Virus record (IMG/VR): IMGVR_UViG_3300020172_006270
Span: 62,001 to 126,000 of that record
Direction: 5' to 3' (one strand)
Length of the DNA stretch: 64,000 nucleotides
In this document: one piece after another, positions 872 through 23,287 of the stretch
Numbering within the stretch: position 1 is the first letter of the stretch
Layout of the letters: the number at the start of each line of letters is the position of its first letter
Translations under genes and position numbers: made by a program
Notes under the pieces: generated by a model
Databases searched by the model: none
What the model saw: the letters and a program-made list of their open reading frames with translations, nothing else
What the model was told of the DNA's origin: nothing

Positions 872-2095
872 TTACTCGTTTGTCATCATGCCCATCTTGG
901 GGAGGAATACTTCCAAAGGCAAGGTTTCCTGATCGCCCGAAGTTGATCTCATTTGCTTGAGAGTCACAGTCCTTGCGGTCTTTTCTTTTTCTCCCAAGAT
1001 GACCATATACGGTACTTTTTTCTCATACCCGATGGCAATCTTTTGTTGTAGCGTCCGATTCGAGTGATCGCATTCACACCGAATCCCTTGAGCGAGCAAG
1101 GCTTCTTTGACTTCGTTGGCGTAATCAGCAACCTTGTCGCTGATTGGTGCAATAGTAACACCGACCGGAGCCAACCACATTGGTAAATTCCCATCAGTGT
1201 GTTCTAACAGCACACCGATGAAACGCTCGAAGCTGCCATATATCGCTCGGTGAATAACAATCGGAGTTTGTTCTTTGTCTTCCTTGTCGGTGTAAGTGCA
1301 ACCGAATCGCTGCGGCAATTGGAAGTCTAACTGGATAGTAGCAGTTTGCCATTCACGACCCAGGGAGTCAGTTACAATGAAGTCGATTTTCGGTCCATAA
1401 AAAGCACCGTCTTTATGAGCCACGTCAAACTTCAAATTATTTTCACACAAGGCGTCTTCAAGGCTTGCTTCAGCATTATCCCAAGTCAATATATCGCCCA
1501 TGAAGTTATCGGGACGAGTGCTGAGTACGGATCGGAACTTCATTCCGAACCAGCCGTATACTCTGCCGATCATAATGAGAATTCGCTTGATCTCGCTTTG
1601 CAGGTTGTCCGGCGAAACGAAAATATGGGCATCATCTTGGCAGAACGCACGACAACGAGTAAGTCCACCCAAGGCACCGGAAACCTCGTTTCGATGCAAT
1701 GGGCCATACTCGGCGAACCGCACGGGCAAATCTCGATAGCTCCACTGCTTTGAGCGGAATATCTCCATATGCCCAGGGCAGTTCATTGGCTTCAAACAAC
1801 AATCTTCATGTTCTTCGTCTTGCTTCTCGCCAGTTGGCTTATCGCTGACGAAGAACATATTTTTCGCATAGTGGTCCAGATGCCCGCTGGTTGCATAAAG
1901 TTCGGACTTCCAGACGAGTGGGGTCCGAACTTCTTGGCAACCATTGGCTTCATTGAGTTGGCGAATGCGATTCAGCAATGATTGATAAAGGACAACTCCC
2001 TTCGGAAGCCAAATCGGACAGCCCGGAGATAGAGGGCTGAACATGAAGAGGTCTAGTTTCTGGCCGATTGCTCGGTGGTCCCGGTTGTTGTCCAT
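872..2095 (-). CDS. thrS: threonyl-tRNA synthetase, catalytic core plus anticodon-binding domain only
   Basis: DHRAIGQKLDLF, KPMNCPGH, HRNEVSGALGGLTR, QDDAH, GAFYGPKID, TIQLDF, IHRAIYGSFERF motifs; starts at the catalytic core. Confidence 0.97.
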   Translation of the reverse strand: MDNNRDHRAIGQKLDLFMFSPLSPGCPIWLPKGVVLYQSLLNRIRQLNEANGCQEVRTPLVWKSELYATSGHLDHYAKNMFFVSDKPTGEKQDEEHEDCCLKPMNCPGHMEIFRSKQWSYRDLPVRFAEYGPLHRNEVSGALGGLTRCRAFCQDDAHIFVSPDNLQSEIKRILIMIGRVYGWFGMKFRSVLSTRPDNFMGDILTWDNAEASLEDALCENNLKFDVAHKDGAFYGPKIDFIVTDSLGREWQTATIQLDFQLPQRFGCTYTDKEDKEQTPIVIHRAIYGSFERFIGVLLEHTDGNLPMWLAPVGVTIAPISDKVADYANEVKEALLAQGIRCECDHSNRTLQQKIAIGYEKKVPYMVILGEKEKTARTVTLKQMRSTSGDQETLPLEVFLPKMGMMTNE

Positions 2096-2771
2096 TTATT
2101 CCCTCGATTAAGCCACGCAGTTCTTTGTTTTCGGAGCGTAACTCTTTCAGTTCTCTAAGAATTTGCAGAAGCAGAGAACCGTAGTCGATATACCCTTCTT
2201 CTGATTTCTTTTTCTTTTGATATTCTTCATTCTGGCGATCTCGTTCTTCAACATATCGAGGTTTATTCTCGGTCAGTCGAGCTTCAATTTCGCCCCAAAT
2301 CTTCAGTAGCTCTTTGCGACTCGAAGATTTCTTTTGGGTTGTCGCTAGTTCACGTTCGAGTCGTCGCTTTTCGTCCGTGAGCCATTGCCGTTCTTCAACG
2401 AAAGTGTCGAAGCTGGGGATGTCAATTTCCATCTTTTGAGCTTCCGCATATTTTTGTCTCTTTCGAGGGTTGTTTGTTGTCTTGGGTGGTCGGGCGAGTC
2501 CCCGATATGTTGGTTCGTCAGCAATTACTGTGACGAGCCGATATTCATCAATTGTTACTGATTCGAGAATGAACAACACTCCGGCGTTGAAGCTGTAAAC
2601 CGATCCATCTAAACGAGGGAGCGGATAGGGCAAAGGTTCGTTTTTCTTGATGACCCTGGACGCTTTTACGGCTTGAACGATCTCCTGTACGTTGACTTCT
2701 CCTGTTTTTGACGCACGTTCTTTCCATCGCAGTAAAGCGTGGTCCGTGACGTGGACGGTTTCGGCACGCAT
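1950..2771 (-). CDS. hypothetical protein (N-terminal TDHALLRWKER motif, coiled-coil C-terminus)
   Basis: RBS GGGAG before ATG 2771; 3' end overlaps thrS by 146 nt. Confidence 0.7.
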   Translation of the reverse strand: MRAETVHVTDHALLRWKERASKTGEVNVQEIVQAVKASRVIKKNEPLPYPLPRLDGSVYSFNAGVLFILESVTIDEYRLVTVIADEPTYRGLARPPKTTNNPRKRQKYAEAQKMEIDIPSFDTFVEERQWLTDEKRRLERELATTQKKSSSRKELLKIWGEIEARLTENKPRYVEERDRQNEEYQKKKKSEEGYIDYGSLLLQILRELKELRSENKELRGLIEGINGQQPGPPSNRPETRPLHVQPSISGLSDLASEGSCPLSIIAESHSPTQ

Positions 2772-2796
2772 GTTATCTCCCTTGTAAGGTGAAAAA

Positions 2797-3063
2797 GGAG
2801 ATGCAACCGTCCGTAGCCTGGATTTTGTTCTATGTCGTCATTTATCTCGGAGTTACCTCCGGTCCTTGTGGACTGCACCGACCCGACCGTACAAACGCCC
2901 TGCTCACCGGCTCCGGTCTGTATGGCTTGCACCCTCGGTAGTTCAGACGCTAATCGCCCTTGCGGGTTTTCGCTCCTACCTTAAAAGCAGTGGTGTCCAG
3001 AACTTCCTCTATGATCTCCCCTTGCGAGGAATCACAGCGACGACTCGACCTTGTTGCATCCCC
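2797..3063 (-). ncRNA. rnpB: RNase P RNA, minimal form (about 267 nt)
   Basis: P1 GGGGAUGCAAC/GUUGCAUCUCC; P2 GUCGUC/GACGAC; P3 GCAA hairpin; CR-I GAGGAAGUUCUGGAC and CR-V GAACAAAAUCCAGGCUA forming P4; P5 CACC/GGUG followed by CAAG; P18 CGGAG-GUAA-CUCCG; CR-IV AGAUAAAUGAC. Confidence 0.92.
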
Positions 3064-3099
3064 TTATATCATACCAATGGAGCTTGACTGGTGCGATAG

Positions 3100-3128
3100 A
3101 TCATACCACGCATTGGCGAAACTGTAAA
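3100..3128 (-). promoter_or_regulatory. sigma70-type phage promoter upstream of the RNase P RNA
   Basis: TTTACA-17nt-TATGAT with CGTGG before the -10; a second TGGTATGAT lies at about 3068-3076. Confidence 0.7.
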
Positions 3129-3129
3129 A

Positions 3130-4005
3130 TCAGAAGTAGGCCCCCAGGCCGTCTGATCGGTGAAAGAAGAATTTTTCATCCATCGGGCGATCATCGACAA
3201 TCGGGCGAATCCAATTTTCGTTCATCAGTCCGTTGAAAAACGGAGTGTCATATCTCCCACCTTTAATGCCGAATATCATTTGTAACATGCCACCAAGAAT
3301 CATATGTGATTTGCGCATGTTCTTTAACTCGTGAGCAATTGGCATCGAATAAGCACCACATCCTAATAATGCTATATCGAAATCAATGCTTTTTATTTTT
3401 TCAATCAACAAATCAGCGGTTTCAAACATATTGCCATTAGGCAGAACGCAAGAAAATCTTTTGGAGTTAAATGTGATTGGCGATTTAACAATGTGCAATT
3501 GTTCAAATTTGGGATAATCAAAAGAGAACAGTCGCTTGCCATATTGCATTTTTATGGAATATTCAAACGGACTTACAGCCAATATCTTTTTGTTAGCCAA
3601 TAATGGAAGCCATTCTGACAATCTATACATTGCCTCGATCACAGAAAAATCATGCAGTCTCTTTAGTTGCAACCAACTTACAATTGGCTTCGTATCGCTG
3701 CCACCAGTTCTGAACCAGTTCAGGAATTCACCTGCCGCAAACAACATACTTGAATCTCGCACGTTGTTTTCATATAGGTCCATGAATTTTTCTAAGTTGC
3801 TTTGTTTGTTTTCCAGGTCGTAGTATCCAGAAAACTCCTTTAATTTGTCGATTGCTTTTTCGGGACTGATCTGGAAACGCCGAGAGGCGGCGAGATTATG
3901 CTCGCCGCCTCCAACACGAATAAAAGAAAAATAGTCGCTGGCTATCTGCCTCTGCATTTCCTCGACCGTTCGATCTATTGGAACTAATTTGTTAATCGGC
4001 TCCAT
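3130..4005 (-). CDS. glycosyltransferase-like protein (GT-D-fold-like)
   Basis: FDIALLGCGAYSMP..ILGGMLQMIFGIKGGRY motif; AT-rich; start uncertain. Confidence 0.6.
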   Translation of the reverse strand: MEPINKLVPIDRTVEEMQRQIASDYFSFIRVGGGEHNLAASRRFQISPEKAIDKLKEFSGYYDLENKQSNLEKFMDLYENNVRDSSMLFAAGEFLNWFRTGGSDTKPIVSWLQLKRLHDFSVIEAMYRLSEWLPLLANKKILAVSPFEYSIKMQYGKRLFSFDYPKFEQLHIVKSPITFNSKRFSCVLPNGNMFETADLLIEKIKSIDFDIALLGCGAYSMPIAHELKNMRKSHMILGGMLQMIFGIKGGRYDTPFFNGLMNENWIRPIVDDRPMDEKFFFHRSDGLGAYF

Positions 4006-4228
4006 CAACATTTTGAAATTCCTGGTTCTGAAAGCGTCTACACCCTTCTTCAAATTCTGAGCGGGTAGGCAATACTGGTGCAGTATTTAATTGCACGCCA
4101 ACAATATTTGCAATCCTTTCAAACAAATCTGGATAATACCAGCAACGGTCATGGCCTTGTTTACTATCCCATTCGAGAATAACTTCTCGAATATCTTTGA
4201 TTTGCTCCTCGCTAGATTTGTTTGACAT
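3992..4228 (-). CDS. hypothetical protein
   Basis: 78-aa ORF coupled to its neighbours. Confidence 0.65.
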   Translation of the reverse strand: MSNKSSEEQIKDIREVILEWDSKQGHDRCWYYPDLFERIANIVGVQLNTAPVLPTRSEFEEGCRRFQNQEFQNVDGAD

Positions 4229-8444: not shown

Positions 8445-9590
8445 CTAATTCCCGTATTTTGGCCGAACACCGAAAATGTGCGGTATGAATCGACTCATGT
8501 TCCCCGTCACAAGGGTCTTGTCTTCTCGAATGCCGATTCCACATGCCCAGCCATTGACCATCCAACTCCCAATGCAGGCGTGGTTGCCGTCGAACTTGGG
8601 TAATTCCCAAAGATGCTGATATACACACGGGCCATCATAAGGACCATCAGTTTTGAGCAGCAATTCTCCATGCTCAAATATTTGCACATTAGCACCCTCA
8701 CGACTCAGAATAGGCTTCTGAACGTAAGGCTTATTGCGAAGCGGTTGGAATGATGCTTCCAACAGGTTCGGATGATCTGGAAACAACTCCCACAGCACAG
8801 GCAAGATTGCCTTATTGCTCAAGAGTGCCTTCCAAGGAGCCTCAAGCCATTTGCTTGTTTTGAGGAACAGCTTTTTGCCGAACTCATCAGTCTGCATCCA
8901 TTCCCACGGATACAGCTTGAAGCAGGTTTGAATGGGATTTTCATTCAGGTCGGTAAATGTACGGCGACCTTCGTTCCACCCAATGTTCTCAATGTCAATA
9001 TATTCCGTCTCCCAGCCAGCTTGGATGGCGGTATCACGGAGATAATTGACGTTCATGTAGTCTTCGAGATTGCCAGCAAGTGCTGTGAAGTACAACACTC
9101 CTGGCGTTACGGCTCTCAGTTCTTTCCACACTTCGATCAGTCGTTCGTGGATTGAGTTGAACTGGTTGCGATTCGGGAATTTGTCTTTGGCCCAATACCA
9201 TTGGGTTACAGCGGCTTCGATTAGGCCGGTTGGCGTATCAGCGTTATATTCCAACATTTTGGGTTGGGTTTTTCCGTCGTAGGAAAAATCAAACCGACCA
9301 TAAATGGTGTGTTCATCGTGTTCCCAACTGTCACGAATGAACTGATGGAATTCAGGCGGGATCAAGAAGGCATCGAAGAGATTATTGTCGATGACGTGTT
9401 GGACGGCCTCAAGACAACGATCATTCAGTTCGTAAGACGCCGCTTCGAGGGTGTTTATCTCGGCAGCATCAAATTCGTAGTATGCCGATTCATCCCAATA
9501 AATATCACCATCGAATGTATGAAACAACATGCCTTGACCTTCGACGGTCTTCTTCCAGTCGGGCCGAAGATCAGTTATATGGCGTTTCAT
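8445..9590 (-). CDS. glutathionylspermidine-synthase-family ATP-grasp ligase (YgiC/YjfC-like)
   Basis: YWDESAYY, YGRFDF, LEYNADTPT, FNSIHERLI, FKLYPWEWM, KPILSREGANV, GIGIRED. Confidence 0.93.
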   Translation of the reverse strand: MKRHITDLRPDWKKTVEGQGMLFHTFDGDIYWDESAYYEFDAAEINTLEAASYELNDRCLEAVQHVIDNNLFDAFLIPPEFHQFIRDSWEHDEHTIYGRFDFSYDGKTQPKMLEYNADTPTGLIEAAVTQWYWAKDKFPNRNQFNSIHERLIEVWKELRAVTPGVLYFTALAGNLEDYMNVNYLRDTAIQAGWETEYIDIENIGWNEGRRTFTDLNENPIQTCFKLYPWEWMQTDEFGKKLFLKTSKWLEAPWKALLSNKAILPVLWELFPDHPNLLEASFQPLRNKPYVQKPILSREGANVQIFEHGELLLKTDGPYDGPCVYQHLWELPKFDGNHACIGSWMVNGWACGIGIREDKTLVTGNMSRFIPHIFGVRPKYGN

Positions 9591-11535: not shown

Positions 11536-11949
11536 TCACAAGGTTTTCCAATTCCCGTCCGATTCCCTTTTCAGGTAAATCACTTCCACGCCTAATGGTT
11601 TTTCTTCTTTTTTGTCGAGTTCCAACTCAGGCCAGATTCGCTTCATGATCTTAGCCCAAATGAAATACAACACCAAGGTCAGGATAACGAAGTCAATCAT
11701 GGTTCCAATAAGACGGCCCACTTCTAGGTTCATCCCAGGAAAAGGATGTGCCACCCATGTTCTCCAATCGCCGCCAGTGCCAACCACTAAGTAATTGACA
11801 AATGGCATGATGAGATAATCGGATATGCCAGATACAGCCTTTTGAAATGCTGTGGCAAGTATCAGGCCGATAGCGACTCCCAGCATATTGCGATTGAAGG
11901 CGAAGTTTTTGTATTCTTGGAACTCTTTGTTTGGATCAATAGGTATCAT
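11536..11949 (-). CDS. mscL: MscL-family mechanosensitive channel
   Basis: EYKNFAFNRNMLGVAIGLILATAFQKAVSGISDYLIMP matches the MscL S1/TM1 pattern; second TM helix present. Confidence 0.8.
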   Translation of the reverse strand: MIPIDPNKEFQEYKNFAFNRNMLGVAIGLILATAFQKAVSGISDYLIMPFVNYLVVGTGGDWRTWVAHPFPGMNLEVGRLIGTMIDFVILTLVLYFIWAKIMKRIWPELELDKKEEKPLGVEVIYLKRESDGNWKTL

Positions 11950-13073: not shown

Positions 13074-13075
13074 AG

Positions 13076-13159
13076 TGACCTCGGTGGGACTTGAACCCAC
13101 ACGTCCTTTCGGACACAAGTTCCTAAGACTTGAGCGTATGCCAATTTCGCCACGAGGCC
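13076..13159 (-). tRNA. tRNA-Leu(TAG), long variable arm
   Basis: cloverleaf, CAAGT-CTTAGGA-ACTTG, GGTTCAAGTCC, A73. Confidence 0.95.
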
Positions 13160-13203
13160 GTTATTTTGCGCATGAGTTCGCCAAATTTTCGTGTTCGCCA
13201 TAC

Positions 13204-13232
13204 ATTTTACCACGTTTTCGGCATCTTGTAAA
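13204..13232 (-). promoter_or_regulatory. sigma70-type phage promoter
   Basis: TTTACA-17nt-TAAAAT with CGTGG. Confidence 0.7.
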
Positions 13233-13235
13233 ACG

Positions 13236-13317
13236 TAGCCCTGGCGGGACTCGAACCCGCAATCCTTTCGGCGACAGATTTTAAGTCTGTTGTGTATACC
13301 AATTCCACCACAGGGCC
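13236..13317 (-). tRNA. tRNA-Leu(TAA), long variable arm
   Basis: ACAGA-CTTAAAA-TCTGT, GGTTCGAGTCC. Confidence 0.95.
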
Positions 13318-13319
13318 GC

Positions 13320-13508
13320 TCATTCGTCTTTATCGTCTTTGTGACAGTCGCAATGACAACCTTTGTGTTTGTTCTTGTATTCTATGTACTTCCTGTATCT
13401 GATTTTATTGTACCAGTTGGTGCCGGTCATTGTTCCTAAAATGGCAAGGATTGCTGTCACCAGGATATAACCAATTTCTAAAAAGCCACCACAAATACAA
13501 GCAATCAT
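13320..13508 (-). CDS. small membrane protein with a Cys/His tail
   Basis: RBS GAGGA, MIACICGG..., one TM helix. Confidence 0.6.
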   Translation of the reverse strand: MIACICGGFLEIGYILVTAILAILGTMTGTNWYNKIRYRKYIEYKNKHKGCHCDCHKDDKDE

Positions 13509-13533
13509 TTCACTGTTCTTTCCTCGGAGTATC

Positions 13534-13577
13534 AAAAAAATGAGCATATCACCTAAGCCTTCTTCGGTGATATGCTC
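13534..13577 (-). terminator. intrinsic terminator downstream of the rRNA-like RNA
   Basis: GAGCAUAUCACC...GGUGAUAUGCUC followed by AUUUUUUU. Confidence 0.85.
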
Positions 13578-13604
13578 CCAGGCACCAGCAATGCAATGCC
13601 GGTG

Positions 13605-13794
13605 TCGAGTGTCAGGTTGGCTCGGCCAGTGTGCTATTACGCCAAAAGGGATCGCAAACAAGGAAGGCCCAAGTTTTCTCCCTACTCTTTGAATGGACCG
13701 GATTGCTCCGGCGCTGTGGCTGCTTCTAAGCCAACATCCTGGCTGTCTTTGTTTCCCCGAAAGGCAGGTCGTACCTTACCTCTAAATCACTCGA
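13605..13794 (-). ncRNA. structured RNA containing a 23S rRNA H42-H44 (GTPase-associated centre) mimic
   Basis: AGACAGCCAGGAUGUUGGCUUAGAAGCAGCCA [20-nt insert] CCAUUCAAAGAGU [41-nt insert] GCGUAAUAGCACACUGGCCGAG, closed by UCGAGUG/CACUCGA. Confidence 0.88.
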
Positions 13795-13840
13795 TCTACC
13801 GTAGTCATTGTATTCACAATGCTTCCTACAGCGGTTTGGC

Positions 13841-14275
13841 TCACTTATCCAACTTGGCAGGCACAGTGCCTTCCTTATTGGACTTGTCGGCAGCGATCTT
13901 TGGCTCAGGAACGAGCCATCGGGTCATTGCCGTAGTCTTAGTATAGCCAAATTGCTGAATGGCAGCGTGATACCCGTCTGCATAATTGTTTTCAGCACCG
14001 CAGAGCTTCAGTGCGTCATCCCAGCCGTCTTGATACGCACCGGGGGTTTGTGGGCCACCGATGCGAATCAGGGCGGCTTTATATCCCTGATCGTAGGTGG
14101 GCTTGCCAGCAAGCTCGGAGATTTCATCCTTGAGAATACGATGCTCGGCATCGTAGATGGAGTTCACCAGCGAGAGTCGCTGATTCTCCTTCTGAATATT
14201 CCAGGTGTGCCACGTCATTGCGCCAATGCACAATGCAGAAATCCCGGCAATGGTCCATCCAGTTTTCGTACTCAT
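13841..14275 (-). CDS. hypothetical membrane-anchored protein
   Basis: N-terminal TM helix; YDQGY/YQDGW/YADGY repeats. Confidence 0.7.
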   Translation of the reverse strand: MSTKTGWTIAGISALCIGAMTWHTWNIQKENQRLSLVNSIYDAEHRILKDEISELAGKPTYDQGYKAALIRIGGPQTPGAYQDGWDDALKLCGAENNYADGYHAAIQQFGYTKTTAMTRWLVPEPKIAADKSNKEGTVPAKLDK

Positions 14276-14356
14276 TTGCAATCTTCCTTCGGGTCTTGGT
14301 TTGGAAATCAACACAAAGTCGGAGTATACAGTCATGGAAGATAAAATCAAGCCGAG

Positions 14357-14773
14357 TTAGCTTGTCTTTTTGTCGCCATCACCACGTTGACGGGCGGCGA
14401 CGTAGAAGACGTAAGAAGTCTTGCTCTGACCCATAGCCATCTTGCTGGGAGATTCGGTTTGTCGGTAGGTAACTGCAAGTTTGGTTGTCGGAGTCTCGTA
14501 GGCCAGCAGTTCTTTCATCCTGGCTAGAATTGATGCAATAAACTGAGGACTGCCTGTGAGTCGCATTCCGTCTTCGCCATATGTGGAACCCTTGTGGGTA
14601 TAGTCAATGGCTTGCATCTGAACGGGCGTATCGGGACGTAAGTTCTTCCAGTAAGCCACAATTTCGTCTTTTGTGGCTTTCCATTTGGTCGATTGCTGAG
14701 AAGGGGCCGCTTGAGGCTGTTGTGCCTGCGGCTGCATTTCTTGCGATCCCATGAATTCCTTGAACGTCATCAT
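14357..14773 (-). CDS. hypothetical protein, possible internal head protein
   Basis: MMTFKEFM..E N-terminus; TATATA-N4-ATG upstream. Confidence 0.75.
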   Translation of the reverse strand: MMTFKEFMGSQEMQPQAQQPQAAPSQQSTKWKATKDEIVAYWKNLRPDTPVQMQAIDYTHKGSTYGEDGMRLTGSPQFIASILARMKELLAYETPTTKLAVTYRQTESPSKMAMGQSKTSYVFYVAARQRGDGDKKTS

Positions 14774-14776
14774 ACC

Positions 14777-15001
14777 TTATATACCGACTTTTGATCTGAT
14801 CTTGTCGCTGTGCTTGTGGACTTTTTTGTGATCCACGCCACCTTTGCGGTATGCCTTGTTCTTTTCTTCGGAATTCTGGTCGCTACAAGCCCCAATTACC
14901 TGATAATCACTGGTATCCGTGCAGTTTCCGATATACGGACCACTGCCCATTTCCCGGAGTTTGGCTTCTCTTGTCTGCATCCAGTCTTTGAATTTAATCA
15001 T
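14777..15001 (-). CDS. hypothetical protein, possible internal head protein
   Basis: MIKFKDWM..E N-terminus; TATATA-N4-ATG upstream. Confidence 0.7.
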   Translation of the reverse strand: MIKFKDWMQTREAKLREMGSGPYIGNCTDTSDYQVIGACSDQNSEEKNKAYRKGGVDHKKVHKHSDKIRSKVGI

Positions 15002-15004
15002 GCC

Positions 15005-15724
15005 TTATATATCACTGGACAAATCTAATGCAATTCCCCACTCTCGGTTTTTATTGGCAACGTAATTTCTAGTAGTTTTCGCCTTATCCAATATTTCAGC
15101 GTTGATCCGCTGGGTTTCTTTGATGTTTTTGTTGCGAAAATTCCTTGCTCGTTCTTTTTCGTTGTGGTCAATTGCTCGGCAAAAACGGAGCGGCGTCTCT
15201 GCGTATTTCAATTTGTTGTGCATTGCTGCACGAAATTCAAAGTCTATATCATCCCAGCCCCAGCCTACGTTCATATCTTCGTTGTAGCCATTGACGCTAT
15301 AGAAGTGTTCTCGACGGACGGCGATTTTCCCACAACTGCCAGACATATTGAACATATCAAATACGGGAGCAGTCATGATGCGATCTTTATTCTGCATGAC
15401 TTCTTGGATCAACTGAACAAAGCCGTCGATCAAGAAATTGTCGGCGTCTAAATTGCAAAGAATATCGCCGGTCGCTTGGCGATGAGCAATGTTTTTGGCG
15501 TGAGATGCCTGAAAGTGTTCGGGAAGCTGAGTTCGATAGTATTTGACGGTTCCACGCTCGATCCAGGGCCGGATATTGTCACGGACCCATTCGTGCATTC
15601 CGTCTTTGCTGCCATAATTAAGCAGCACAAACTCGCAATCTGGTGCGACATGAAGGTTTATGGGCAGGGTTCTCATTAGATGATGAACCCTGCCCATGCA
15701 AGTTGTGCAAAATGATATTTTCAA
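15005..15724 (-). CDS. GT-A glycosyltransferase (GT2/GT7-like)
   Basis: NLDAD, VNGYNEDM..GWGWDD. Confidence 0.88.
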   Translation of the reverse strand: MKISFCTTCMGRVHHLMRTLPINLHVAPDCEFVLLNYGSKDGMHEWVRDNIRPWIERGTVKYYRTQLPEHFQASHAKNIAHRQATGDILCNLDADNFLIDGFVQLIQEVMQNKDRIMTAPVFDMFNMSGSCGKIAVRREHFYSVNGYNEDMNVGWGWDDIDFEFRAAMHNKLKYAETPLRFCRAIDHNEKERARNFRNKNIKETQRINAEILDKAKTTRNYVANKNREWGIALDLSSDI

Positions 15725-15725
15725 A

Positions 15726-16376
15726 TTAGCCCTTCAAGAACAAGGCCATGAATCCTCTTGATAGTGGCGAATCATAATATCCAGTACACCGAGGATGTTT
15801 GGCCAAAGCGAAAATCTTTTCTCTATATTCGCTTTGAGTTTGTGGGCTTGTCCAATCAGGAGCGGAGTCAGACCGATATGGCGAAGTATCGTGAAATACT
15901 GCAAGTTTACGCAGCGTTCCTTTGTTGAGCATAATCTCGCATTCGAGGGGTCTGATCTCAGTCAGACTATCGAAGAATCCAATATCGAATACCATATTGG
16001 ATTGTTGTAAGAATTCAAGAGAATCAACGCAATGTACTTCAGCCCATTTAAGCAAGTGTTCTTCTTCAAGAACGGTTTGCAATCGAACGCATTGGGGTGG
16101 CAGAACTTCGAGAGAATGAACCTTGCCGAAGCCATTGAGTTTGCACGCATGAGCCAGAGCAGTTGTACCGAAGCCTTCCCAGGCACCAGTTTCCAAAACC
16201 AAGTCGGGCTTCAATACTCGAATGGTTGAGTGCAGCCAATTGAGGACTTCATATTCTGTTGAGCCGCCATCGGCTACTTCAAATAAGTCTGCACGTTCCG
16301 CTGCGATGTGTGGGTGAACATCGCATTCTCTAAGAATGGGACTCCAAGCTGGTTTCCAAGTATAATCTCGTTCCAC
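15726..16376 (-). CDS. class I SAM-dependent methyltransferase
   Basis: VLETGAWEG, GFFDS, VFHDT; paralogue of the next gene. Confidence 0.85.
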   Translation of the reverse strand: MERDYTWKPAWSPILRECDVHPHIAAERADLFEVADGGSTEYEVLNWLHSTIRVLKPDLVLETGAWEGFGTTALAHACKLNGFGKVHSLEVLPPQCVRLQTVLEEEHLLKWAEVHCVDSLEFLQQSNMVFDIGFFDSLTEIRPLECEIMLNKGTLRKLAVFHDTSPYRSDSAPDWTSPQTQSEYREKIFALAKHPRCTGYYDSPLSRGFMALFLKG

Positions 16377-16377
16377 T

Positions 16378-17019
16378 TCAACCCCTTAAAAACAAAGCAA
16401 TAAATCCTCTGGATAAAGTCCACTCAAAGTAGCCAGTGCAAAGAGGATTTTTTGCCATGTCGAATATTTTGTTTCTGAATGTGTCTTGTTCTTCTTTGGT
16501 AGTATACACTGTGGTTCGAGTTGCGGCTGTGTCGTGAAACACTGCTATTTTTTTGATTATTCCACGACGCATACAAATCATGCCTTCGTCGGCTTTGATT
16601 TCAATCAAAGTATCGAAGAACCCAATATCAAATATTAGATCGGTTTCTTCTAAAAACTTCATTGAATCGCATTCGTGAACCTCAGCCCATTCACTTAACC
16701 CCTCGTCAGCAAGTCGTTGTCGAACTTGTGCGCAAGTCTCCGGGTTATGTTCAAGAGAGTGAACTTTGCCAAATCCATTTAGCTTGCAGGCGTGAGCCAA
16801 AGCAATTGTCCCCATGCCCTCCCAGGCACCAGTTTCCAAAACCACTTCAGGTTTCATGACCCTAACGGTTGCATGGAGCCAATTCAGAACTTCAAATTCG
16901 GTAGAGCTAGGATCAGCAACATCGAACAAATGTGCTTTTTCACAGGCATCATGCAGATGAATATCAGCTTCGATTTGCAATGGAGTCCATGCAGGCTTCC
17001 AAGTGTAGTCTTTTTCCAT
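16378..17019 (-). CDS. class I SAM-dependent methyltransferase
   Basis: VLETGAWEG, GFFDT, VFHDT; tandem duplicate. Confidence 0.85.
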   Translation of the reverse strand: MEKDYTWKPAWTPLQIEADIHLHDACEKAHLFDVADPSSTEFEVLNWLHATVRVMKPEVVLETGAWEGMGTIALAHACKLNGFGKVHSLEHNPETCAQVRQRLADEGLSEWAEVHECDSMKFLEETDLIFDIGFFDTLIEIKADEGMICMRRGIIKKIAVFHDTAATRTTVYTTKEEQDTFRNKIFDMAKNPLCTGYFEWTLSRGFIALFLRG

Positions 17020-17298
17020 TTAACCGCCTAAAGATATTACCGATGCTGTGACTTCTTCGCCCGCTTCTTTTTGCTTTTGGCATTCTTTGAAAACACAAAT
17101 CATGCACAAAGCCGGGACGTGAGGGTTATTGACTTTCATTGTGGTTTGGCGAGGTCCAATCCAACATCCAACTCCACAATTCTCACAGGGAATCCTACCT
17201 GAACCTGCATGTGGAACATATGGCACATCTTCCATTCCAAGTCGATCTTTGGCTTCGATTGGAATAAGTGCCAATACATTCATTCTTTGCTCGTCCAC
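17020..17298 (-). CDS. hypothetical Zn-binding protein
   Basis: CENC...CMIC. Confidence 0.65.
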   Translation of the reverse strand: MDEQRMNVLALIPIEAKDRLGMEDVPYVPHAGSGRIPCENCGVGCWIGPRQTTMKVNNPHVPALCMICVFKECQKQKEAGEEVTASVISLGG

Positions 17299-17316
17299 GA
17301 TTATTTCCTTCTTGGA

Positions 17317-17550
17317 TTATATATCGCCCCGGCGAATGATCCCGGATTTCATCAGCGATGGAACGTCATTGGGATTAAGACCATGTAATTCTTTGTAGTG
17401 CCTTTGCACCAAGTATCTTTCAACACCAATGCTGAAAGGCATCCATTCACCAAGTTCAGCGGACAGTTTGGTGATTTCCGCTTCTTTGTTTTTGTCCCGA
17501 TAGTGCAGGGGAAGGCCACAAGCACAGCGTTTGACTTGATTTCTACTCAT
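17317..17550 (-). CDS. hypothetical protein
   Basis: MSRNQVKRCACGLPLHY. Confidence 0.6.
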   Translation of the reverse strand: MSRNQVKRCACGLPLHYRDKNKEAEITKLSAELGEWMPFSIGVERYLVQRHYKELHGLNPNDVPSLMKSGIIRRGDI

Positions 17551-17914
17551 CGAACTGCCCTTTTGGAATTGGTCCATATTGTCTTGCCATGCACGCTCTG
17601 AGGTATCGTCTTGTAAGACGTTCAAGGCTTGGCAAATACATGGTGATGAAAGCCTGTCGCAGTTCGCTGATTTCTTTTTTGCCGGGGTTGAAGCCTTTGG
17701 GTCGAAGGTATCCTGATATGCTCACGCCTGTTGGCCGGTGTATCAGAAATACCGCTCGCAACTTTTTGTGTTTTTCGTTTTTGTCTGACCGGACGCAGAC
17801 TTCTCCTGGTCGTATTTTGAATTTTCCAAAAGAATAATCCGACACGCATCTTTGAAGCACGCTGTTGTCAATGTGCATTGATTCTCGAACTTGCGTGGCG
17901 TTAGGTTTTCGCAT
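17543..17914 (-). CDS. hypothetical protein
   Basis: overlap-coupled ORF; AVFLIHRPTGVSI weakly recalls the RF-1 domain but has no GGQ. Confidence 0.55.
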   Translation of the reverse strand: MRKPNATQVRESMHIDNSVLQRCVSDYSFGKFKIRPGEVCVRSDKNEKHKKLRAVFLIHRPTGVSISGYLRPKGFNPGKKEISELRQAFITMYLPSLERLTRRYLRACMARQYGPIPKGQFDE

Positions 17915-18086
17915 TGGCTTTTTGTTTCCAACAGACTGCGTGGTAAATGGCAGGCAATCCATCTATCGCTATGATTTCTGGATCGAGGACATATTTGCGG
18001 TTGATCTTGAGTGCATGGCCGCACTTACGACATTGCCGATTCTTATGCTTGCAATTTTTCGTGACTTTGTATTCGGGTCGCATCAT
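17901..18086 (-). CDS. hypothetical Cys-rich small protein
   Basis: CRKCG...YHAVC. Confidence 0.55.
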   Translation of the reverse strand: MMRPEYKVTKNCKHKNRQCRKCGHALKINRKYVLDPEIIAIDGLPAIYHAVCWKQKANAKT

Positions 18087-18361
18087 CGTTCCTCGATGTC
18101 GGTTCCCCAAAAACCAAATCGGAACCAGAAGGTCTTGCCGTCTTCGACTTGGACTTTATAGATGCGACAATTTTTGCTATGCCAGAACGGTCCAATATCG
18201 AAATGGTGTCGATCTATGCTGGAAACAACATGCTTGTTCGTCGCAGCCCAGGTATTTATTTCCTTTCGGTCGCTGGATTCCTGCGCAGGCAGAATTATGA
18301 GTGCCAATAGCAAAAACACAACAACGACGACAGCCAAAATCTTCTTTTCCATGATCTCCAT
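18083..18361 (-). CDS. hypothetical membrane-anchored protein
   Basis: N-terminal hydrophobic helix. Confidence 0.65.
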   Translation of the reverse strand: MEIMEKKILAVVVVVFLLLALIILPAQESSDRKEINTWAATNKHVVSSIDRHHFDIGPFWHSKNCRIYKVQVEDGKTFWFRFGFWGTDIEER

Positions 18362-18371
18362 CCATAAACGA

Positions 18372-18400
18372 CAAAAGCGTGGTGATTATACCACGCTTTT
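18372..18400 (-). terminator. terminator after tuf, overlapping a CGTGGTATAAT -10 element
   Basis: AAAAGCGTGGT-GATTAT-ACCACGCTTTT inverted repeat. Confidence 0.65.
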
Positions 18401-18408
18401 GCGTTTCT

Positions 18409-19581
18409 TTACAGCAGTTCCGTCACGACGCCTGAGCCAATCGTCATACCGCCCTCTCGGATAGCGAAATGACTGCCTTTTTCAATGGCAATCGGCTTAT
18501 CCAGGGTGATAAACAGGCAAGTGTTCTCGCCCGGCATAACCAATTCGATTCCTTCCGGCATTTCAACAAGGCCGGTGACGTTAGTGGTTCGGAAGAAGAA
18601 CTGCGGCTTATAACCGTTGAAGATCGGGGTGTGACGCCCGCCCTCATCCTTGCCCAAGACGTAAATTTCACTCTTGAACTTGGTGTGAGGTTTGATACTT
18701 CGTGGTTGTGCCACAACCTGTCCACGCTCCACCTGATCGGCTTTGATGCCTCTCAGCAGCAACCCGACGTTCTGACCAGCTTCGCCAAATTCCAATTGCT
18801 TGTTGAAGGCTTCGACGCTGGTGACAACCGATTCCAGAATGTCTCCCAGGCCCAAGATTTCAACTTTGGTTCCGACCGTGACGGTTCCTTGCTCGATCTT
18901 GCCCGTGACTACACAGCCACGACCTTCGATGTTGTGAACGCCCTCGATAGGCATCAAGAAAGGACGGTCAATAGAACGGCTGGGGTCAGGGATATAAGAA
19001 TCCAGAGCCGCCATCAGTTCTACGATGCACTTGCTTGCTGCGGGATCGGCAGGGTTATCCAGAGCGGGCTTTGCGGCCCCACGGATAAAGGGAGTCTTCT
19101 CACCATCGAAGCCATACTTCGTCAGCAAGTCTCTCGTTTCCATCTCGACCAGTTCGAGCAATTCCTTATCCTGAACCAGATCACACTTATTGAGGAACAC
19201 GACAATATCCGGCACGCCCACCTGACGAGCGAGCAGAATATGCTCTTTCGTCTGAGGCATAGGACCGTCTGCTGCATTGACGAGCAATACAGCGCCGTCC
19301 ATTTGAGCGGCCCCGGTAATCATGTTCTTCACATAGTCGGCGTGACCAGGGCAGTCGATGTGAGCATAGTGACGGGTATCCGTCTCATACTCAACGTGCG
19401 ACGTGGTGATCGTTACCGTTTTGGTAACGTCACGAACGGTGCCGCCCTTGGCGATGTCGCCGTATGCTTTCTTTTTTGCGAAACCCTTTTCGGCCTGAAC
19501 AGCGAGAATAGCTGCGGTCAGGGTCGTCTTCCCGTGGTCAATGTGACCAATCGTTCCGACATTGATGTGGACTTTCTTCAC
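18409..19581 (-). CDS. tuf: elongation factor Tu
   Basis: [54 protein letters not shown]; GTG start after AGGAG. Confidence 0.98.
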
Positions 19582-19705
19582 TTTACTTTCTCCTGTGATC
19601 TTTACGATAGATCACTGTTGGAGGTTTTGATCTCTATATCCCCACTACAGAATAGTGTTTCTACTCACAACGAGTAAGAGCCAAGGCATCCAGAAATCGA
19701 AACAG

Positions 19706-19789
19706 TGCCGCTCCCCGGACTTGAACCGGGACGCCGGTAAAGGCATCAGATTTTGAGTCTGACGTGTCTGCCAATTCCACCAGAGCGGC
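19706..19789 (-). tRNA. tRNA-Leu(CAA), long variable arm
   Basis: TCAGA-CTCAAAA-TCTGA. Confidence 0.95.
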
Positions 19790-19802
19790 ATAAACAAAAC
19801 AG

Positions 19803-19877
19803 TGACGGGTGTGGGACTCGAACCCACAAAACCATGATTTTAAGTCACGGATGTCTGCCTAGTTGCATCAACCCGCC
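19803..19877 (-). tRNA. tRNA-Leu(TAA), short variable loop
   Basis: CGTGA-CTTAAAA-TCATG, variable region GTTTT. Confidence 0.88.
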
Positions 19878-19883
19878 ATACAG

Positions 19884-19960
19884 TGCCAGCGGTGGGACTC
19901 GAACCCACAAAACCCCGGCTCTCGACCGGAGATGTCTACCATAGGTTGCATCACGCTGGC
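19884..19960 (-). tRNA. tRNA-Leu(GAG), short variable loop, C33
   Basis: TCCGG-TCGAGAG-CCGGG, variable region GTTTT. Confidence 0.82.
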
Positions 19961-19992
19961 ATATAGTGCCGGATCGCTCCAGCACTAATCTC

Positions 19993-20295
19993 TTAATCCT
20001 CACCACGCAACTCTTTGAGTTGTTCGTTGTAGTCCACGTCAGACTTCAATTCGTGATTGTGCTTTGACCGCTTTGGATACTTGTCGCTATGACAGATGCC
20101 GCACTGCGGATTGCCACAATCGAAAGCGTCTTTCTTACGGAATCGACCCTTCTGTTCATCACATTCACAGTCAACAACATATGCGCTGACGCCAATGCGA
20201 TTTCTTGTCCAGGTTTTGTTGCTCTCAACGTGAGAGCGCCGGTGTTTCTTCCACTCACGCAGAGTGATCTTGTAATCCTCGTGCCACCGCTTCAT
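19993..20295 (-). CDS. small basic Cys-containing hypothetical protein
   Basis: RBS GGAGG; CGNPQCGICH. Confidence 0.75.
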   Translation of the reverse strand: MKRWHEDYKITLREWKKHRRSHVESNKTWTRNRIGVSAYVVDCECDEQKGRFRKKDAFDCGNPQCGICHSDKYPKRSKHNHELKSDVDYNEQLKELRGED

Positions 20296-20376
20296 CGTTC
20301 CCTCCATAATGGGTTTGGGTAATAGGCTCGATGAAGCCGATGATTTGCGTGTGGTGAGTGTTCATGTTTATTCTCT

Positions 20377-20829
20377 CTAGTTAAGGAAGCAACAGTCCGG
20401 GTTGGGACACCAATCTCCGAACTCTTCGGATTGGGTGTCAGAAATCAATCGTGTGTAACAGCAACGGCAATGTCCTTTGACCCACCATGCTGGGCCGAAC
20501 CATCGAAAGCCGCCACGAGTTGTTTCGTAGTAGCATCCAATTCGTTCTAGCCAATCCATAATAGTGTGGGCGATCATTCGCCGTTCAGCATCACGCCATG
20601 AGTAAGGAAATTCATGCCACTCATAGCCATGACCACTTTCTCGGTATTGATGATCTCGACCGAGATACTTCCATGATTTTTGCTTGCGAACAAACTGATC
20701 GTCCCATGCCGTGGGAAGGTTTCGTCTCTTCCCACGGACATAGGGATCATTGCGGTCTTGGTTCGCTCTTATTTCTTGTGTTGTTCTCGGATACCGAAGG
20801 CACGTCGAGAACCATCTTTTCTTTGCCAT
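20377..20829 (-). CDS. basic hypothetical protein
   Basis: RBS AGGAG; RYPRTTQE..RGKRRNLPTAWDD; C-terminal Cys cluster. Confidence 0.75.
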   Translation of the reverse strand: MAKKRWFSTCLRYPRTTQEIRANQDRNDPYVRGKRRNLPTAWDDQFVRKQKSWKYLGRDHQYRESGHGYEWHEFPYSWRDAERRMIAHTIMDWLERIGCYYETTRGGFRWFGPAWWVKGHCRCCYTRLISDTQSEEFGDWCPNPDCCFLN

Positions 20830-20858
20830 GTAGCGTTTCTCCTAAGTGCGGAATGCAC

Positions 20859-20894
20859 TTAAAAGACGCTACCCAGCCTTTCGTGAATTTTCAT
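20859..20894 (-). CDS. putative 11-aa leader peptide MKIHERLGSVF
   Basis: AGGA RBS; stop codon lies in a hairpin that sequesters the RBS of the 20829 gene. Confidence 0.5.
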   Translation of the reverse strand: MKIHERLGSVF

Positions 20895-21028
20895 ACGAGT
20901 CCTTTTACTTTGTTCTTTCAAATATGTGGACTGTCGAATCCTTGACAGTTTTACTTACCGATCATAGGCGATCCTATCGCTACCGGGGTCAGCCTCATGT
21001 TCATCCTGAACATCAGCGTCCACTTCCA

Positions 21029-21541
21029 TCAACCCGTCCAAATTTCTTCTTTTCCAGTCGGCGGGTCATTCAATCTCTTCAAAAATTTACCTGTATATTT
21101 ATGGTCTTCGGGGTTCAAACCCTTCCGCAAATACCGCACATCTGGTGTTACTTCTCGTTCCGAATACTGATATTCAATGCCCAGCCGAGTGTGTTTGATG
21201 ATTTTCTTTTCTTTATCCACCCATTCGTATTCACGAGCCTGATCGACAACTACAGTGCCTTTCATGCCTTCGATGTCGATGTCATATTCGTGCATGTTCT
21301 GGATTTCAATTTCGTCTTCTTCAACCAACGCCCAACAAGGATAGCTGTACCGTTTAGGCGGTGGGTTTTCATGGATCGGTCCACCCATCAACATTCGTCG
21401 CAAGAGAGCCGAGTGGCCAACATCAGCCGAACTTGAACCTCGTTTATTGTCTTCGCAGATATTCATCCACTGGCAAACCATCTTGCAAGCGAACTCACAC
21501 TGCTCACGAGTCAACGATGTAACTTTTTCTTCGTCCATCAT
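21029..21541 (-). CDS. hypothetical protein
   Basis: RBS GGAG; lies between tRNA blocks. Confidence 0.75.
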   Translation of the reverse strand: MMDEEKVTSLTREQCEFACKMVCQWMNICEDNKRGSSSADVGHSALLRRMLMGGPIHENPPPKRYSYPCWALVEEDEIEIQNMHEYDIDIEGMKGTVVVDQAREYEWVDKEKKIIKHTRLGIEYQYSEREVTPDVRYLRKGLNPEDHKYTGKFLKRLNDPPTGKEEIWTG

Positions 21542-21555
21542 ATTCTCCAACAAAG

Positions 21556-21632
21556 TACCCAGGACGGGACTCGAACCCGTAAAACCGATATTTTGAGTAT
21601 CGGATGTCTACCGAAGGTTGCATCACCTGGGC
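21556..21632 (-). tRNA. tRNA-Leu(CAA), short variable loop
   Basis: CGATA-CTCAAAA-TATCG, variable region GTTTT. Confidence 0.88.
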
Positions 21633-21669
21633 ATATTCTACCAAATCTCGTCTTGGCTGTACAGCCAAG

Positions 21670-21757
21670 TGGACAGCGACGGAATCGAACCGCTCCGGCA
21701 CCCACCCTACTTTTTTAATGCCAACGGATTTACAGTCCGCCGTAAGGAACGCTATCC
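21670..21757 (-). tRNA. tRNA-Tyr(GTA)-like, no D-arm, enlarged variable arm
   Basis: acceptor GGATAGC/GCTGTCC-A, GCGGA-CTGTAAA-TCCGT, GGTTCGATTCC. Confidence 0.78.
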
Positions 21758-21814
21758 ATGTTTTCCTAAAAACAGGTGTTTTCCCACATAGGAAAACATG
21801 CGTTTTTAGGAAAG

Positions 21815-21888
21815 TCGCTCCGGTGGGACTCGAACCCACAGCATCCCTGGTTCTAAGCCAAGGTGGTCTGCCAATTGCCTACAGAGCG
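21815..21888 (-). tRNA. tRNA-Leu(TAG), short variable loop
   Basis: CTTGG-CTTAGAA-CCAGG, variable region GATGC. Confidence 0.88.
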
Positions 21889-21894
21889 TTCAAG

Positions 21895-21966
21895 TGGACT
21901 GTGAGGCGCTCGAATCCTCGTCTCAGCGTTTTCAGCGCTGCGCTACACCATCTCAGCTAACAGTCC
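21895..21966 (-). tRNA. tRNA-Phe(GAA), atypical T-arm
   Basis: CAGCG-CTGAAAA-CGCTG. Confidence 0.82.
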
Positions 21967-21974
21967 ATATACAG

Positions 21975-22058
21975 TGTCCGAGGGGAGAGTCGAACTCCCA
22001 CGCCTTTTACGGCACAAGGCCCTCAACCTTGCGTGTCTACCAATTTCACCACTCGGAC
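21975..22058 (-). tRNA. tRNA-Leu(GAG), long variable arm
   Basis: CAAGG-TTGAGGG-CCTTG. Confidence 0.95.
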
Positions 22059-22070
22059 AAAACAAATCAG

Positions 22071-22145
22071 TGGGCTGTCTCAGAGTCGAACTGAGTTCTC
22101 ATGTTCTTCAGACATGCGCTGAATGACCGCACTAGCTCACAGCCC
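22071..22145 (-). tRNA. tRNA-Phe(GAA)
   Basis: CATGT-CTGAAGA-ACATG. Confidence 0.88.
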
Positions 22146-22154
22146 AATATTCAA

Positions 22155-22334
22155 TTATTCTTTTGTTGCTTCTTCAAGTTCCCTGATGCAATCTCGCAAT
22201 GATATTGTTCGTCCATGCTGGACGCCCATTGCAGTCAATGGGTTCATATCTTTTGCGACATTAGGATTCTCTTGAAATCGCTTCAATCGTTCTTTCCATT
22301 TTTGAATCAATTCTTGTATATTTGTTTCTTGCAT
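22155..22334 (-). CDS. hypothetical small protein
   Basis: RBS AAGGA, MQETNIQELI. Confidence 0.65.
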   Translation of the reverse strand: MQETNIQELIQKWKERLKRFQENPNVAKDMNPLTAMGVQHGRTISLRDCIRELEEATKE

Positions 22335-22350
22335 ATTTAATCCTTCCAAG

Positions 22351-22434
22351 TCTCCGGGGGGAGAGTCGAACTCCCACGCCTTTTACGGCACAAGATTCTG
22401 AGTCTTGCGTGTCTACCAATTCCACCACCCGGAG
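22351..22434 (-). tRNA. tRNA-Leu(CAG), long variable arm
   Basis: CAAGA-CTCAGAA-TCTTG. Confidence 0.95.
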
Positions 22435-22441
22435 ATAAAAG

Positions 22442-22530
22442 CGGAAGTCAAGGGAATTGAACCCTTACCGGATATTTCACCGGGCCTGTTTTCAAGACAG
22501 GTGCAACAAACCAATATTTGCCTAACTTCC
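22442..22530 (-). tRNA. tRNA-Ser(TGA)
   Basis: CCTGT-CTTGAAA-ACAGG, long arm, G73. Confidence 0.92.
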
Positions 22531-22555
22531 ATATTGTGTCAACAACTTTGACATA

Positions 22556-22627
22556 GAGGATACACCGGCTTCGACACCGGATATGTCCCGTTTCTAGCAG
22601 GATGAGTTACATTTCTCCATGTACTCC
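22556..22627 (-). tRNA. degenerate tRNA-like element, anticodon AGA (Ser)
   Basis: GGAGTACA/TGTATCC bulged acceptor, GAG/CTC D-stem, TCCTG-CTAGAAA-CGGGA, aberrant T-loop. Confidence 0.5.
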
Positions 22628-22646
22628 ATATCGCATTTGACACAAG

Positions 22647-22733
22647 CGGAAGCCAAGGGAATTGAACCCTCACCGGGATTAACCGGGCCTGTTTTCGAGA
22701 CAGGTGCAACAAACCAGTATTTGCCTAGCTTCC
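22647..22733 (-). tRNA. tRNA-Ser(CGA)
   Basis: CCTGT-CTCGAAA-ACAGG. Confidence 0.92.
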
Positions 22734-22746
22734 ATAAAACAACAAG

Positions 22747-22836
22747 CGGAGGACAAGGGAATCGAACCCTCACCGGGTATTTCACCGGATCGGTTTAGCA
22801 AACCGACGTAGCAACACCACCATCTACCTATCCTCC
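22747..22836 (-). tRNA. tRNA-Ser(GCT)
   Basis: TCGGT-TTGCTAA-ACCGA. Confidence 0.92.
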
Positions 22837-22842
22837 ATTCAG

Positions 22843-22931
22843 CGGAAGCCAAGGGAATTGAACCCTCACCGGATATTTCACCGGACCCGCTTTCCAGGCG
22901 AGCGCAACAAACCAGTATTTGCCTAGCTTCC
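22843..22931 (-). tRNA. tRNA-Ser(GGA)
   Basis: CTCGC-CTGGAAA-GCGGG. Confidence 0.92.
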
Positions 22932-22987
22932 GTGTAATGCACTATACTTTGAACATTAACCAGGGCTAATGTTCATTCTATCGTACA

Positions 22988-23287
22988 TTATGCTTCAACC
23001 TTCACCAACTTGCCAAAGATACAGTTCCGGCCAACCCAGCCATTGATATGGCCTTTGTTGTTGCCGATCTGGAATCGGTCGCCTTGTATTGCTTTGATTA
23101 AGTGCAGGTATTGTTTGCCTGCAACTTTGCACAATACAATGTCGCCCGTATCCAAAACGCCAGTCACCGGCTCGACAGTGCATAACTGTCCTGATTCGAT
23201 CTTCCCGACCATTGAGTTGCCTCGTGGTCGAAACGAAACCGTCTCACCTGTTTGGAGTTTCGCTATGTAACCAGTCGCCCATCCCAT
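22988..23287 (-). CDS. S24/S26 peptidase-like protein
   Basis: RPRGNSM, GDIVLC, YLHLIK. Confidence 0.75.
   Translation of the reverse strand: MGWATGYIAKLQTGETVSFRPRGNSMVGKIESGQLCTVEPVTGVLDTGDIVLCKVAGKQYLHLIKAIQGDRFQIGNNKGHINGWVGRNCIFGKLVKVEA

Follow-up and report, generated by a model that had tools for sequence, protein, structure and literature searches.

A minimal RNase P RNA gene in a jumbo phage and related huge phages

A 223-kb uncultured phage (IMG/VR contig IMGVR_UViG_3300020172_006270), and a clade of related huge phages, encode a shrunken copy of the RNase P ribozyme that trims tRNA 5' ends. This RNA keeps the whole catalytic core of bacterial type A RNase P RNA but has lost nearly all of the domain that reads the tRNA elbow, and in the literature that could be searched, which leaves out most subscription journals, we found no earlier description of a phage RNase P RNA. 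Two jumbo-phage overviews, one from June 2026, contain no mention of RNase P, and the only viral case we found is the inactive camelpox RNase P-like RNA (PMC3001073).

An RNase P RNA of type A ancestry with a reduced specificity domain

An earlier note, made from sequence alone, had proposed that positions 2797-3063 of a 64,000-nucleotide stretch of this contig (positions 62,001 to 126,000 of the record, henceforth the window) encode a phage RNase P RNA lacking most of the specificity domain. Its observation held: the coordinates, the helices it named (P1-P6 and P15-P18), the recognisable CR-I, CR-IV and CR-V and the 58 nt between the two P5 strands (positions 75-132 of the RNA), containing P7 (GGUAG/CUACC) and a CCC-GCAA-GGG hairpin, are all confirmed. 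We add one extra hairpin and the strand, which the note did not give: the RNA lies on the minus strand, from 3063 to 2797. A search with the Rfam RNase P models had been named beforehand as a test of this assignment. At the Rfam gathering thresholds only tRNAs are reported in the window, so that an ordinary annotation pipeline would not call the gene. However, with an E-value threshold on positions 2500-3400 (901 nt), the best clan member, the bacterial type A model RF00010, matches the minus strand at 2798-3058 over model positions 1-367 with 47.4 bits (E 2.1e-13, roughly 1e-11 scaled to the window), below the gathering score of 100. In this alignment about 110 model positions (P8-P14), the specificity domain, are deleted and replaced by about 20 aligned nucleotides. 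The RNA folds more stably than shuffled sequences (MFE z-score -3.0), is about 267 nt long (P1 can extend to 2795-3065) and occupies the gap at 2772-3129 between two minus-strand ORFs (3130-4053 and 1950-2771).

The phage origin of the window is clear from a tail sheath, a Dda-like helicase, an SbcC-like nuclease, ribonucleotide reductase and the 223-kb IMG/VR contig. The window also encodes CTP synthase. No close relative exists among 50,697 GenBank phage records: megablast of 20 kb and blastn of the RNA gave no relative, and a single 35-nt hit in a Stenotrophomonas phage is chance-level. The 273-residue ORF just downstream of the RNA brought in three related IMG/VR contigs, each with an RF00010 hit at the same place, and a CR-IV to CR-V pattern scan of IMG/VR found only these four contigs. 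In metagenome contigs the same pattern revealed further members of this clade (group A) and two more divergent sets, group B (loci L058, L062, L070, L084 and L095) and group C (L094 and L086). In 185,579 species genomes it gave 22 stretches, none with the 32-nt spacing seen in the phage RNAs. A second IMG/VR scan, from CR-I to GCAAG with a short gap, gave 51 stretches, of which 47 lacked a nearby CR-IV plus CR-V pair in a pattern check, although our covariance model later showed that three of the 47 (L008, L025 and L039) do carry an RNase P RNA. Finally, the downstream protein has 45 homologue clusters, with longest contigs of up to 673 kb on record, and inspection of their contigs revealed nine more distinct RNAs in the same position, in the order helicase, RNA, this ORF and usually a class II aaRS. 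In total we collected 13 syntenic homologues besides the window RNA. One lineage (L127/L128) shows what a dead copy looks like, keeping only P1, P2, CR-IV and CR-V with the core deleted. A lead from 'Microcystis phage MaAM05' was not counted as a phage RNase P, since the region carries fabI, engB, mtgA and a full 400-nt RNase P RNA and looks bacterial.

A covariance model built from the 14 sequences (R1) finds one copy in the window, at 2797-3062 with 279.7 bits, and also recovers groups B and C, a cut copy in a 532-kb IMG/VR contig (L008) and two larger RNase P RNAs in viral contigs L039 and L025. With the Rfam model, relatives score 41-82 bits (up to 81.9 bits for L123), while L124 and group C give no hit at E 0.001.

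Covariation, selection and conserved nucleotides

To probe the structure, we scored the pairs proposed from the window sequence on a MAFFT alignment of the 14 group A sequences. Of all cells, 91.7% are paired, compared with 35-46% when the 3' partners are slid, and 41 of 80 pairs show changes on both sides, against 19.5 +/- 2.8 in shuffles (0 of 500 as high). On a model-based alignment of 23 sequences including groups B and C, 94.2% of cells pair and 58 of 71 pairs show double changes; P4 and P6 were not part of the aligning model, yet are 95-97% paired (96.6% for P6). RNAalifold recovers P3, P4, P15 and P16 on its own.

The 5' strand of P1 (3053-3065) forms 13 consecutive pairs with 2795-2807, and P1 covaries across homologues (10 of 10 pairs with double changes in the 23-sequence alignment). 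In group A, P2, P4, P5, P6 and P17 are 100% paired. P2 (3039-3044 with 2834-2839) has double changes in 5 of 6 pairs, and the P3 hairpin with its GCAA loop (3010-3036) in 8 of 11. CR-I (2997-3009) comprises J3/4 (GAGGAA) and the P4 5' strand with the bulged U at 3001; G57-A62, U65 and C66 of the RNA are invariant in the 14 sequences. The P4 3' strand (2815-2821) lies with J2/4 (AACARAA) in CR-V (2814-2829). P4 has the canonical geometry of 3 bp, a bulged U and 4 bp, and 5 of its 7 pairs have double changes: L124, for example, has C-G where the others have G-C, and A-U where the others have G-C. An alternative register with U64 bulged was rejected in favour of U65, which gives 100% pairing. Within 2985-2995, the P5 5' strand (2992-2995) pairs with 2930-2933, with 2 compensatory pairs, and the P6 5' strand (2985-2990) forms the pseudoknot between J5/7 and the loop of P17 (2900-2905), with 3 compensatory pairs; U-A changes to C-G in L120 and L134, and three pairs are swapped in group B. 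This P6 pseudoknot with P16/P17 distinguishes type A from type B.

J5/15 CAA (2927-2929) occupies the position of the adenosines that contact tRNA N-1 in type A enzymes, and G136, C137, A138 and A139 are invariant. In the P15-L15-P16-P17 arm (2877-2926), P15, P16 and P17 each have compensatory pairs, and the L15 GGU (2881-2883; G183, G184 and U185), the motif for the tRNA 3' end, is invariant in the 14 sequences and also present in groups B and C. CR-IV (AGAUAAAUG, J18/2, 2839-2847; AGAnnAAUG), followed by the P2 3' strand, has invariant A219, G220, A221, A224, A225, U226 and G227. The invariant nucleotides thus sit where catalytic and substrate-binding residues of type A enzymes lie. By contrast, two small hairpins, the extra one before P18 at 2862-2873 (ACAA loop) and P18 at 2848-2861 (GUAA loop), show compensatory pairs but are both absent in L124 and in groups B and C, and are therefore dispensable.

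What is left of the specificity domain is a 44-nt extended P7 hairpin at 2937-2980, comprising the 5-bp P7 (2976-2980 with 2937-2941; 3 pairs with double changes), two inner pairs (2972-2973 with 2949-2950) and a 3-bp hairpin with a GCAA loop (2957-2966), flanked by conserved purine-rich internal loops. One inner pair, C94-G116, covaries strongly (CG 8, AU 5, GC 1). P8 and P10-P14 with CR-II and CR-III are gone, and 44 nt stand in place of about 150. Most members are 219-304 nt long, compared with about 340-400 nt for typical bacterial type A RNAs. The family continues to shrink: L124 has 219 nt, and group C (about 190 nt) also lacks P3 and appears to form P2 with a strand placed 3' of P4, although this last point rests on two near-identical sequences and has no covariation support.

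We next asked if the RNA is under selection. Between the window and the six most distant group A relatives, fourfold degenerate sites of the adjacent ORF are only 22-37% identical, which is saturated, while the RNA remains 57-75% identical over the same comparisons.

Genomic context: promoter motifs, tRNA genes and the neighbouring protein

A sigma-70-type promoter, TTTACA-17-TATGAT with a TG extension, lies directly upstream at 3100-3128 on the minus strand (10 of 12 matches; mean of shuffles 0.4), and the same TTTACA-N17-TGnTAnnAT element was read by eye upstream of the RNA in most related loci. A second extended -10 element (TGGTATGAT, 3068-3076, minus strand), read from the sequence, lies 4 nt before P1 and would put the transcription start at about 3063-3060, the 5' end of P1. 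In L123, L124, L125, L133 and L134 the only -10 lies 5-8 nt before P1. The 5' end is therefore probably made by initiation, an inference from these motifs. No terminator follows the RNA, and the RBS of ORF 1950-2771 lies about 15 nt after it, with the ATG within about 25 nt, so that the RNA is probably the 5' part of an mRNA.

The window carries 14 tRNA genes on the same strand (ARAGORN; 13075-23385; seven Leu, four Ser, two Phe and one Tyr), some only 5-13 nt apart, so that every internal tRNA needs RNase P to be released. It also encodes a threonyl-tRNA synthetase with the catalytic and anticodon-binding parts only (872-2095, minus strand; TIGR00418 thrS, 464.6 bits; Pfam tRNA-synt_2b and HGTP_anticodon) and a full EF-Tu (18409-19581, minus strand; NCBIfam EF-Tu, 624 bits; Pfam GTP_EFTU with D2 and D3). 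In group B the RNA is wedged between tRNA genes with 1-3 nt spacers: in L058 the order is tRNA-Gln (1854-1928), RNA (1930-2192) and tRNA-Ser (2195 onward), and in L062 the RNA ends at 1734 and tRNA-Ala starts at 1736. In viral contig L039 a 318-nt RNase P RNA (182.5 bits), which keeps P7-P11 but has shrunken P12 and P13/P14, lies between tRNA-Cys and tRNA-Gly. Nearly all tRNAs in those arrays encode CCA. By contrast, none of the window's tRNA genes does, so that the canonical L15-CCA contact cannot form on primary transcripts; instead, 13 of 14 read N73-C74-U75, which could pair with the invariant L15 GGU through one G.U wobble, an inference.

The co-oriented downstream ORF (1950-2771, minus strand) has a conserved N-terminal domain of about 85 residues, with invariant H7, H11, R15, W16, R19, E70 and E76, and a Lys/Arg-rich tail. 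Its AF2 model (pLDDT 82) matches RelE1/RelE2, T. thermophilus RelE, BrnT, HigB2 and a CdiA-CT tRNase at modest scores only (Foldseek TM 0.5-0.6, E 9e-3 at best), and phage proteins of unknown function match better. Sequence searches gave no Pfam, NCBIfam or PDB hit, and a protein atlas gave nothing decisive. The ORF accompanies the RNA in all group A loci but is absent near groups B, C, L039 and L025, and it persists where the RNA has decayed (L127/L128). An obligate partnership is therefore unlikely, though not excluded. We found no RnpA domain (PF00825) among about 50 ORFs scanned in the window, which covers 64 of the 223 kb.

A putative ribozyme for phage tRNA maturation

We are reasonably confident that this is a functional, phage-encoded RNase P ribozyme subunit derived from a bacterial type A RNase P RNA. 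In this view, it would be transcribed from its own sigma-70 promoter, with the start at or near P1, run on into the mRNA of the next gene, and most likely remove 5' leaders from the phage's own tightly packed tRNA precursors during infection. Without the elbow-reading domain, substrate binding would rest on the acceptor stem, the contact between L15 GGU and the tRNA 3' end, and a protein cofactor, presumably host RnpA. Homology, structure, covariation, purifying selection, the promoter motif and the genomic link to tRNA genes are shown by our analysis, whereas catalysis, expression, the RNA ends, the substrates, the 3'-end pairing and the protein partner are inferred. The interpretation offered in the earlier note is thus partly supported: the type A ancestry, the intact catalytic domain and the reduced specificity domain hold, its comparison with archaeal type T is apt, and its suggestion of host RnpA remains an inference, but its idea that the enzyme may mature elbow-atypical tRNAs is not supported, since all 14 tRNAs have G18G19 and a TTCRA T-loop, although 6 fall below the Rfam tRNA threshold.

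[quoted passage not shown] Type T, however, has an archaeal catalytic domain with a 3-bp P2, a shorter P15 and no L18, and works with Pop5, Rpp30 and Rpp29, whereas the phage RNA has a 6-bp P2, P18 with a GNRA loop and L15 GGU, matches the bacterial model and lies on a tailed-phage contig with a sigma-70-type promoter. The two are a convergent outcome, not the same lineage. Engineered C-domain-only type A RNAs are catalytically active, showing that a type A catalytic domain without the S-domain can still cleave substrates, but they are poor enzymes in vitro (PMC5839562); those are laboratory deletions, whereas the phage RNA is a natural form under selection that keeps a P7 hairpin. The camelpox/orthopoxvirus RNA showed no pre-tRNA processing activity and only loose structural similarity to RNase P RNA (PMC3001073), whereas the phage RNA has a complete, covarying catalytic core.

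A bolder and unlikely reading, which the evidence does not rule out, is that huge phages and mobile tRNA arrays carry their own lineage of progressively miniaturised RNase P ribozymes, from 318 nt down to about 190 nt, and that in the window's clade the ribozyme works as a new holoenzyme with the co-transcribed, predicted RelE-fold, Lys/Arg-rich protein in place of RnpA. This would give the phage a tRNA-processing activity independent of the host, possibly alongside destruction of host tRNAs.

Among the alternatives, all of which explain less of the conservation pattern, a re-targeted ribozyme is unlikely but survives best. Having lost the elbow-reading domain, the RNA might cleave phage polycistronic mRNAs, its own transcript (to separate itself from the downstream mRNA) or host RNAs, as the stub-like S-domain in every member, the fusion to an mRNA without a terminator and the RNase-toxin-like predicted fold of the neighbouring ORF would allow. 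Against this, L15 GGU and the J5/15 adenosines, which serve tRNA 3'-end and N-1 recognition in type A enzymes, are invariant, group B and L039 are embedded in tRNA arrays, and archaeal type T enzymes with the same reduction belong to genomes whose only detected RNase P RNA is type T (PMC3579882). Slightly less likely is a decoy that sequesters host RnpA or pre-tRNAs to shut down host tRNA maturation, an idea similar to one raised for the camelpox RNA (PMC3001073). All known RnpA-contacting regions (P2-P4, CR-IV, CR-V and P15) are kept and no phage RnpA was found in the window, but a decoy does not need the bulged U of P4, the P6 pseudoknot or exact J3/4 and J2/4 sequences, which are invariant or covarying, and the phage carries 14 tRNA genes of its own that need RNase P. 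A cis-acting leader that senses tRNA or stabilises the mRNA of the RelE-like gene and ThrRS operon, in the manner of a T-box, is less likely still. The missing terminator, the nearby RBS, the synteny of RNA, RelE-like ORF and class II aaRS, and the remnant that survives as the leader in L127/L128 speak for it, but groups B and C and L039 have no such ORF downstream, a leader does not need the full catalytic core, and the L127/L128 protein survives without the RNA core. A non-functional relic of a captured host rnpB gene, suggested by the large internal deletion, the score below the Rfam threshold and the loss of the core in L127/L128, is very unlikely given the same reduced architecture across phages whose adjacent gene is saturated at silent sites, the dozens of compensatory changes and the conserved promoter.

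A natural bacterial-type enzyme without a specificity domain would be an evolutionary experiment that parallels archaeal type T, and it makes two old questions testable: how much of RNase P is needed for tRNA recognition in vivo, and what compensates when the elbow-reading domain is lost. The family also provides very small natural bacterial-type RNase P RNAs (219 nt in L124, about 190 nt in group C) for structural work. If the inferred function is correct, tRNA 5' maturation would join the translation functions that huge phages bring with them, alongside tRNAs, aaRS and EF-Tu.

Translation-related and auxiliary genes of the phage

The phage encodes a full-length EF-Tu (18409-19581, minus strand), which scores 624 bits to the NCBIfam EF-Tu model, and a ThrRS (872-2095, minus strand) that lacks the N-terminal editing/TGS part and matches thrS positions 170-559. 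The 14 tRNAs (13075-23385, minus strand) cover only Leu, Ser and Tyr, the three long-variable-arm classes, plus Phe. None of these tRNAs encodes CCA, and 13 of 14 have C74-U75 after the discriminator. Six of them (4 Ser, Tyr and 1 Phe) are found by ARAGORN, but fall below the gathering score of the Rfam tRNA model. The window also contains auxiliary genes that are uncommon in phages: a glutathionylspermidine synthase (8445-9590), an MscL channel (11536-11949), a sigma-70 region 2 protein (52596-53147) and a PAS-domain protein (50101-50580).

Genes flanking the RNA and a decayed copy

The gene directly downstream of the RNA in all group A loci (the clade of the window; 1950-2771, minus strand, in the window) encodes a conserved phage protein with a RelE/BrnT-like predicted fold, invariant His/Arg/Glu residues and a Lys/Arg-rich tail, and we reason that it could be an RNase or an RNA-binding protein. 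In the related loci L127 (2417-2518) and L128 (same), a decayed copy of the RNA is found: P1, P2, CR-IV and CR-V remain as the leader of the RelE-like gene, while CR-I, P5, P15-P18 and the stub of the specificity domain are deleted. On the upstream side, the Dda/PIF1-like helicase carries an intein with a LAGLIDADG domain in one relative, L124 (1-1831).

Size variation among the RNAs and their association with tRNA arrays

Lineage-specific insertions of about 100, 30 and 14 nt are present in the RNAs of loci L129 (about 1400-1500), L004 and L002, all at the same point between P16 and P17, where they form an extra hairpin. The RNA of the divergent group C (L094, 113-306, and L086) is about 190 nt long and has no P3. 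In this RNA the strand after CR-IV appears to pair with a strand located 3' of the P4 3' strand, which would be a relocated P2 strand, although only two near-identical sequences exist and there is thus no covariation to support this pairing.

Two IMG/VR contigs, L039 (3890-4207) and L025 (58-364), carry larger RNase P type A RNAs that score above the Rfam threshold (182.5 and 214.6 bits, respectively). The RNA of L039 lies inside a tRNA array and keeps P7-P11, but has P12 and P13/P14 shrunk to 8 and 12 nt. The flanking ORFs are mostly ORFans, plus a Dam methylase and a helicase. An unannotated 400-nt bacterial-type RNase P RNA (251.8 bits) is also contained in the GenBank record 'Microcystis phage MaAM05' (L135; MW495066.1, 112323-118400), but this stretch also harbors fabI, engB and mtgA and looks like bacterial DNA.

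The mini RNase P RNAs of the divergent group B (L058, 1930-2192; L070, 144-408; L062, 1525-1734) are about 210-265 nt long and have no P18. They sit between tRNA genes with spacers of 1-3 nt, in arrays of up to 21 CCA-encoding tRNAs in 4.4 kb, an arrangement in which processing of the flanking tRNAs would release the RNA.
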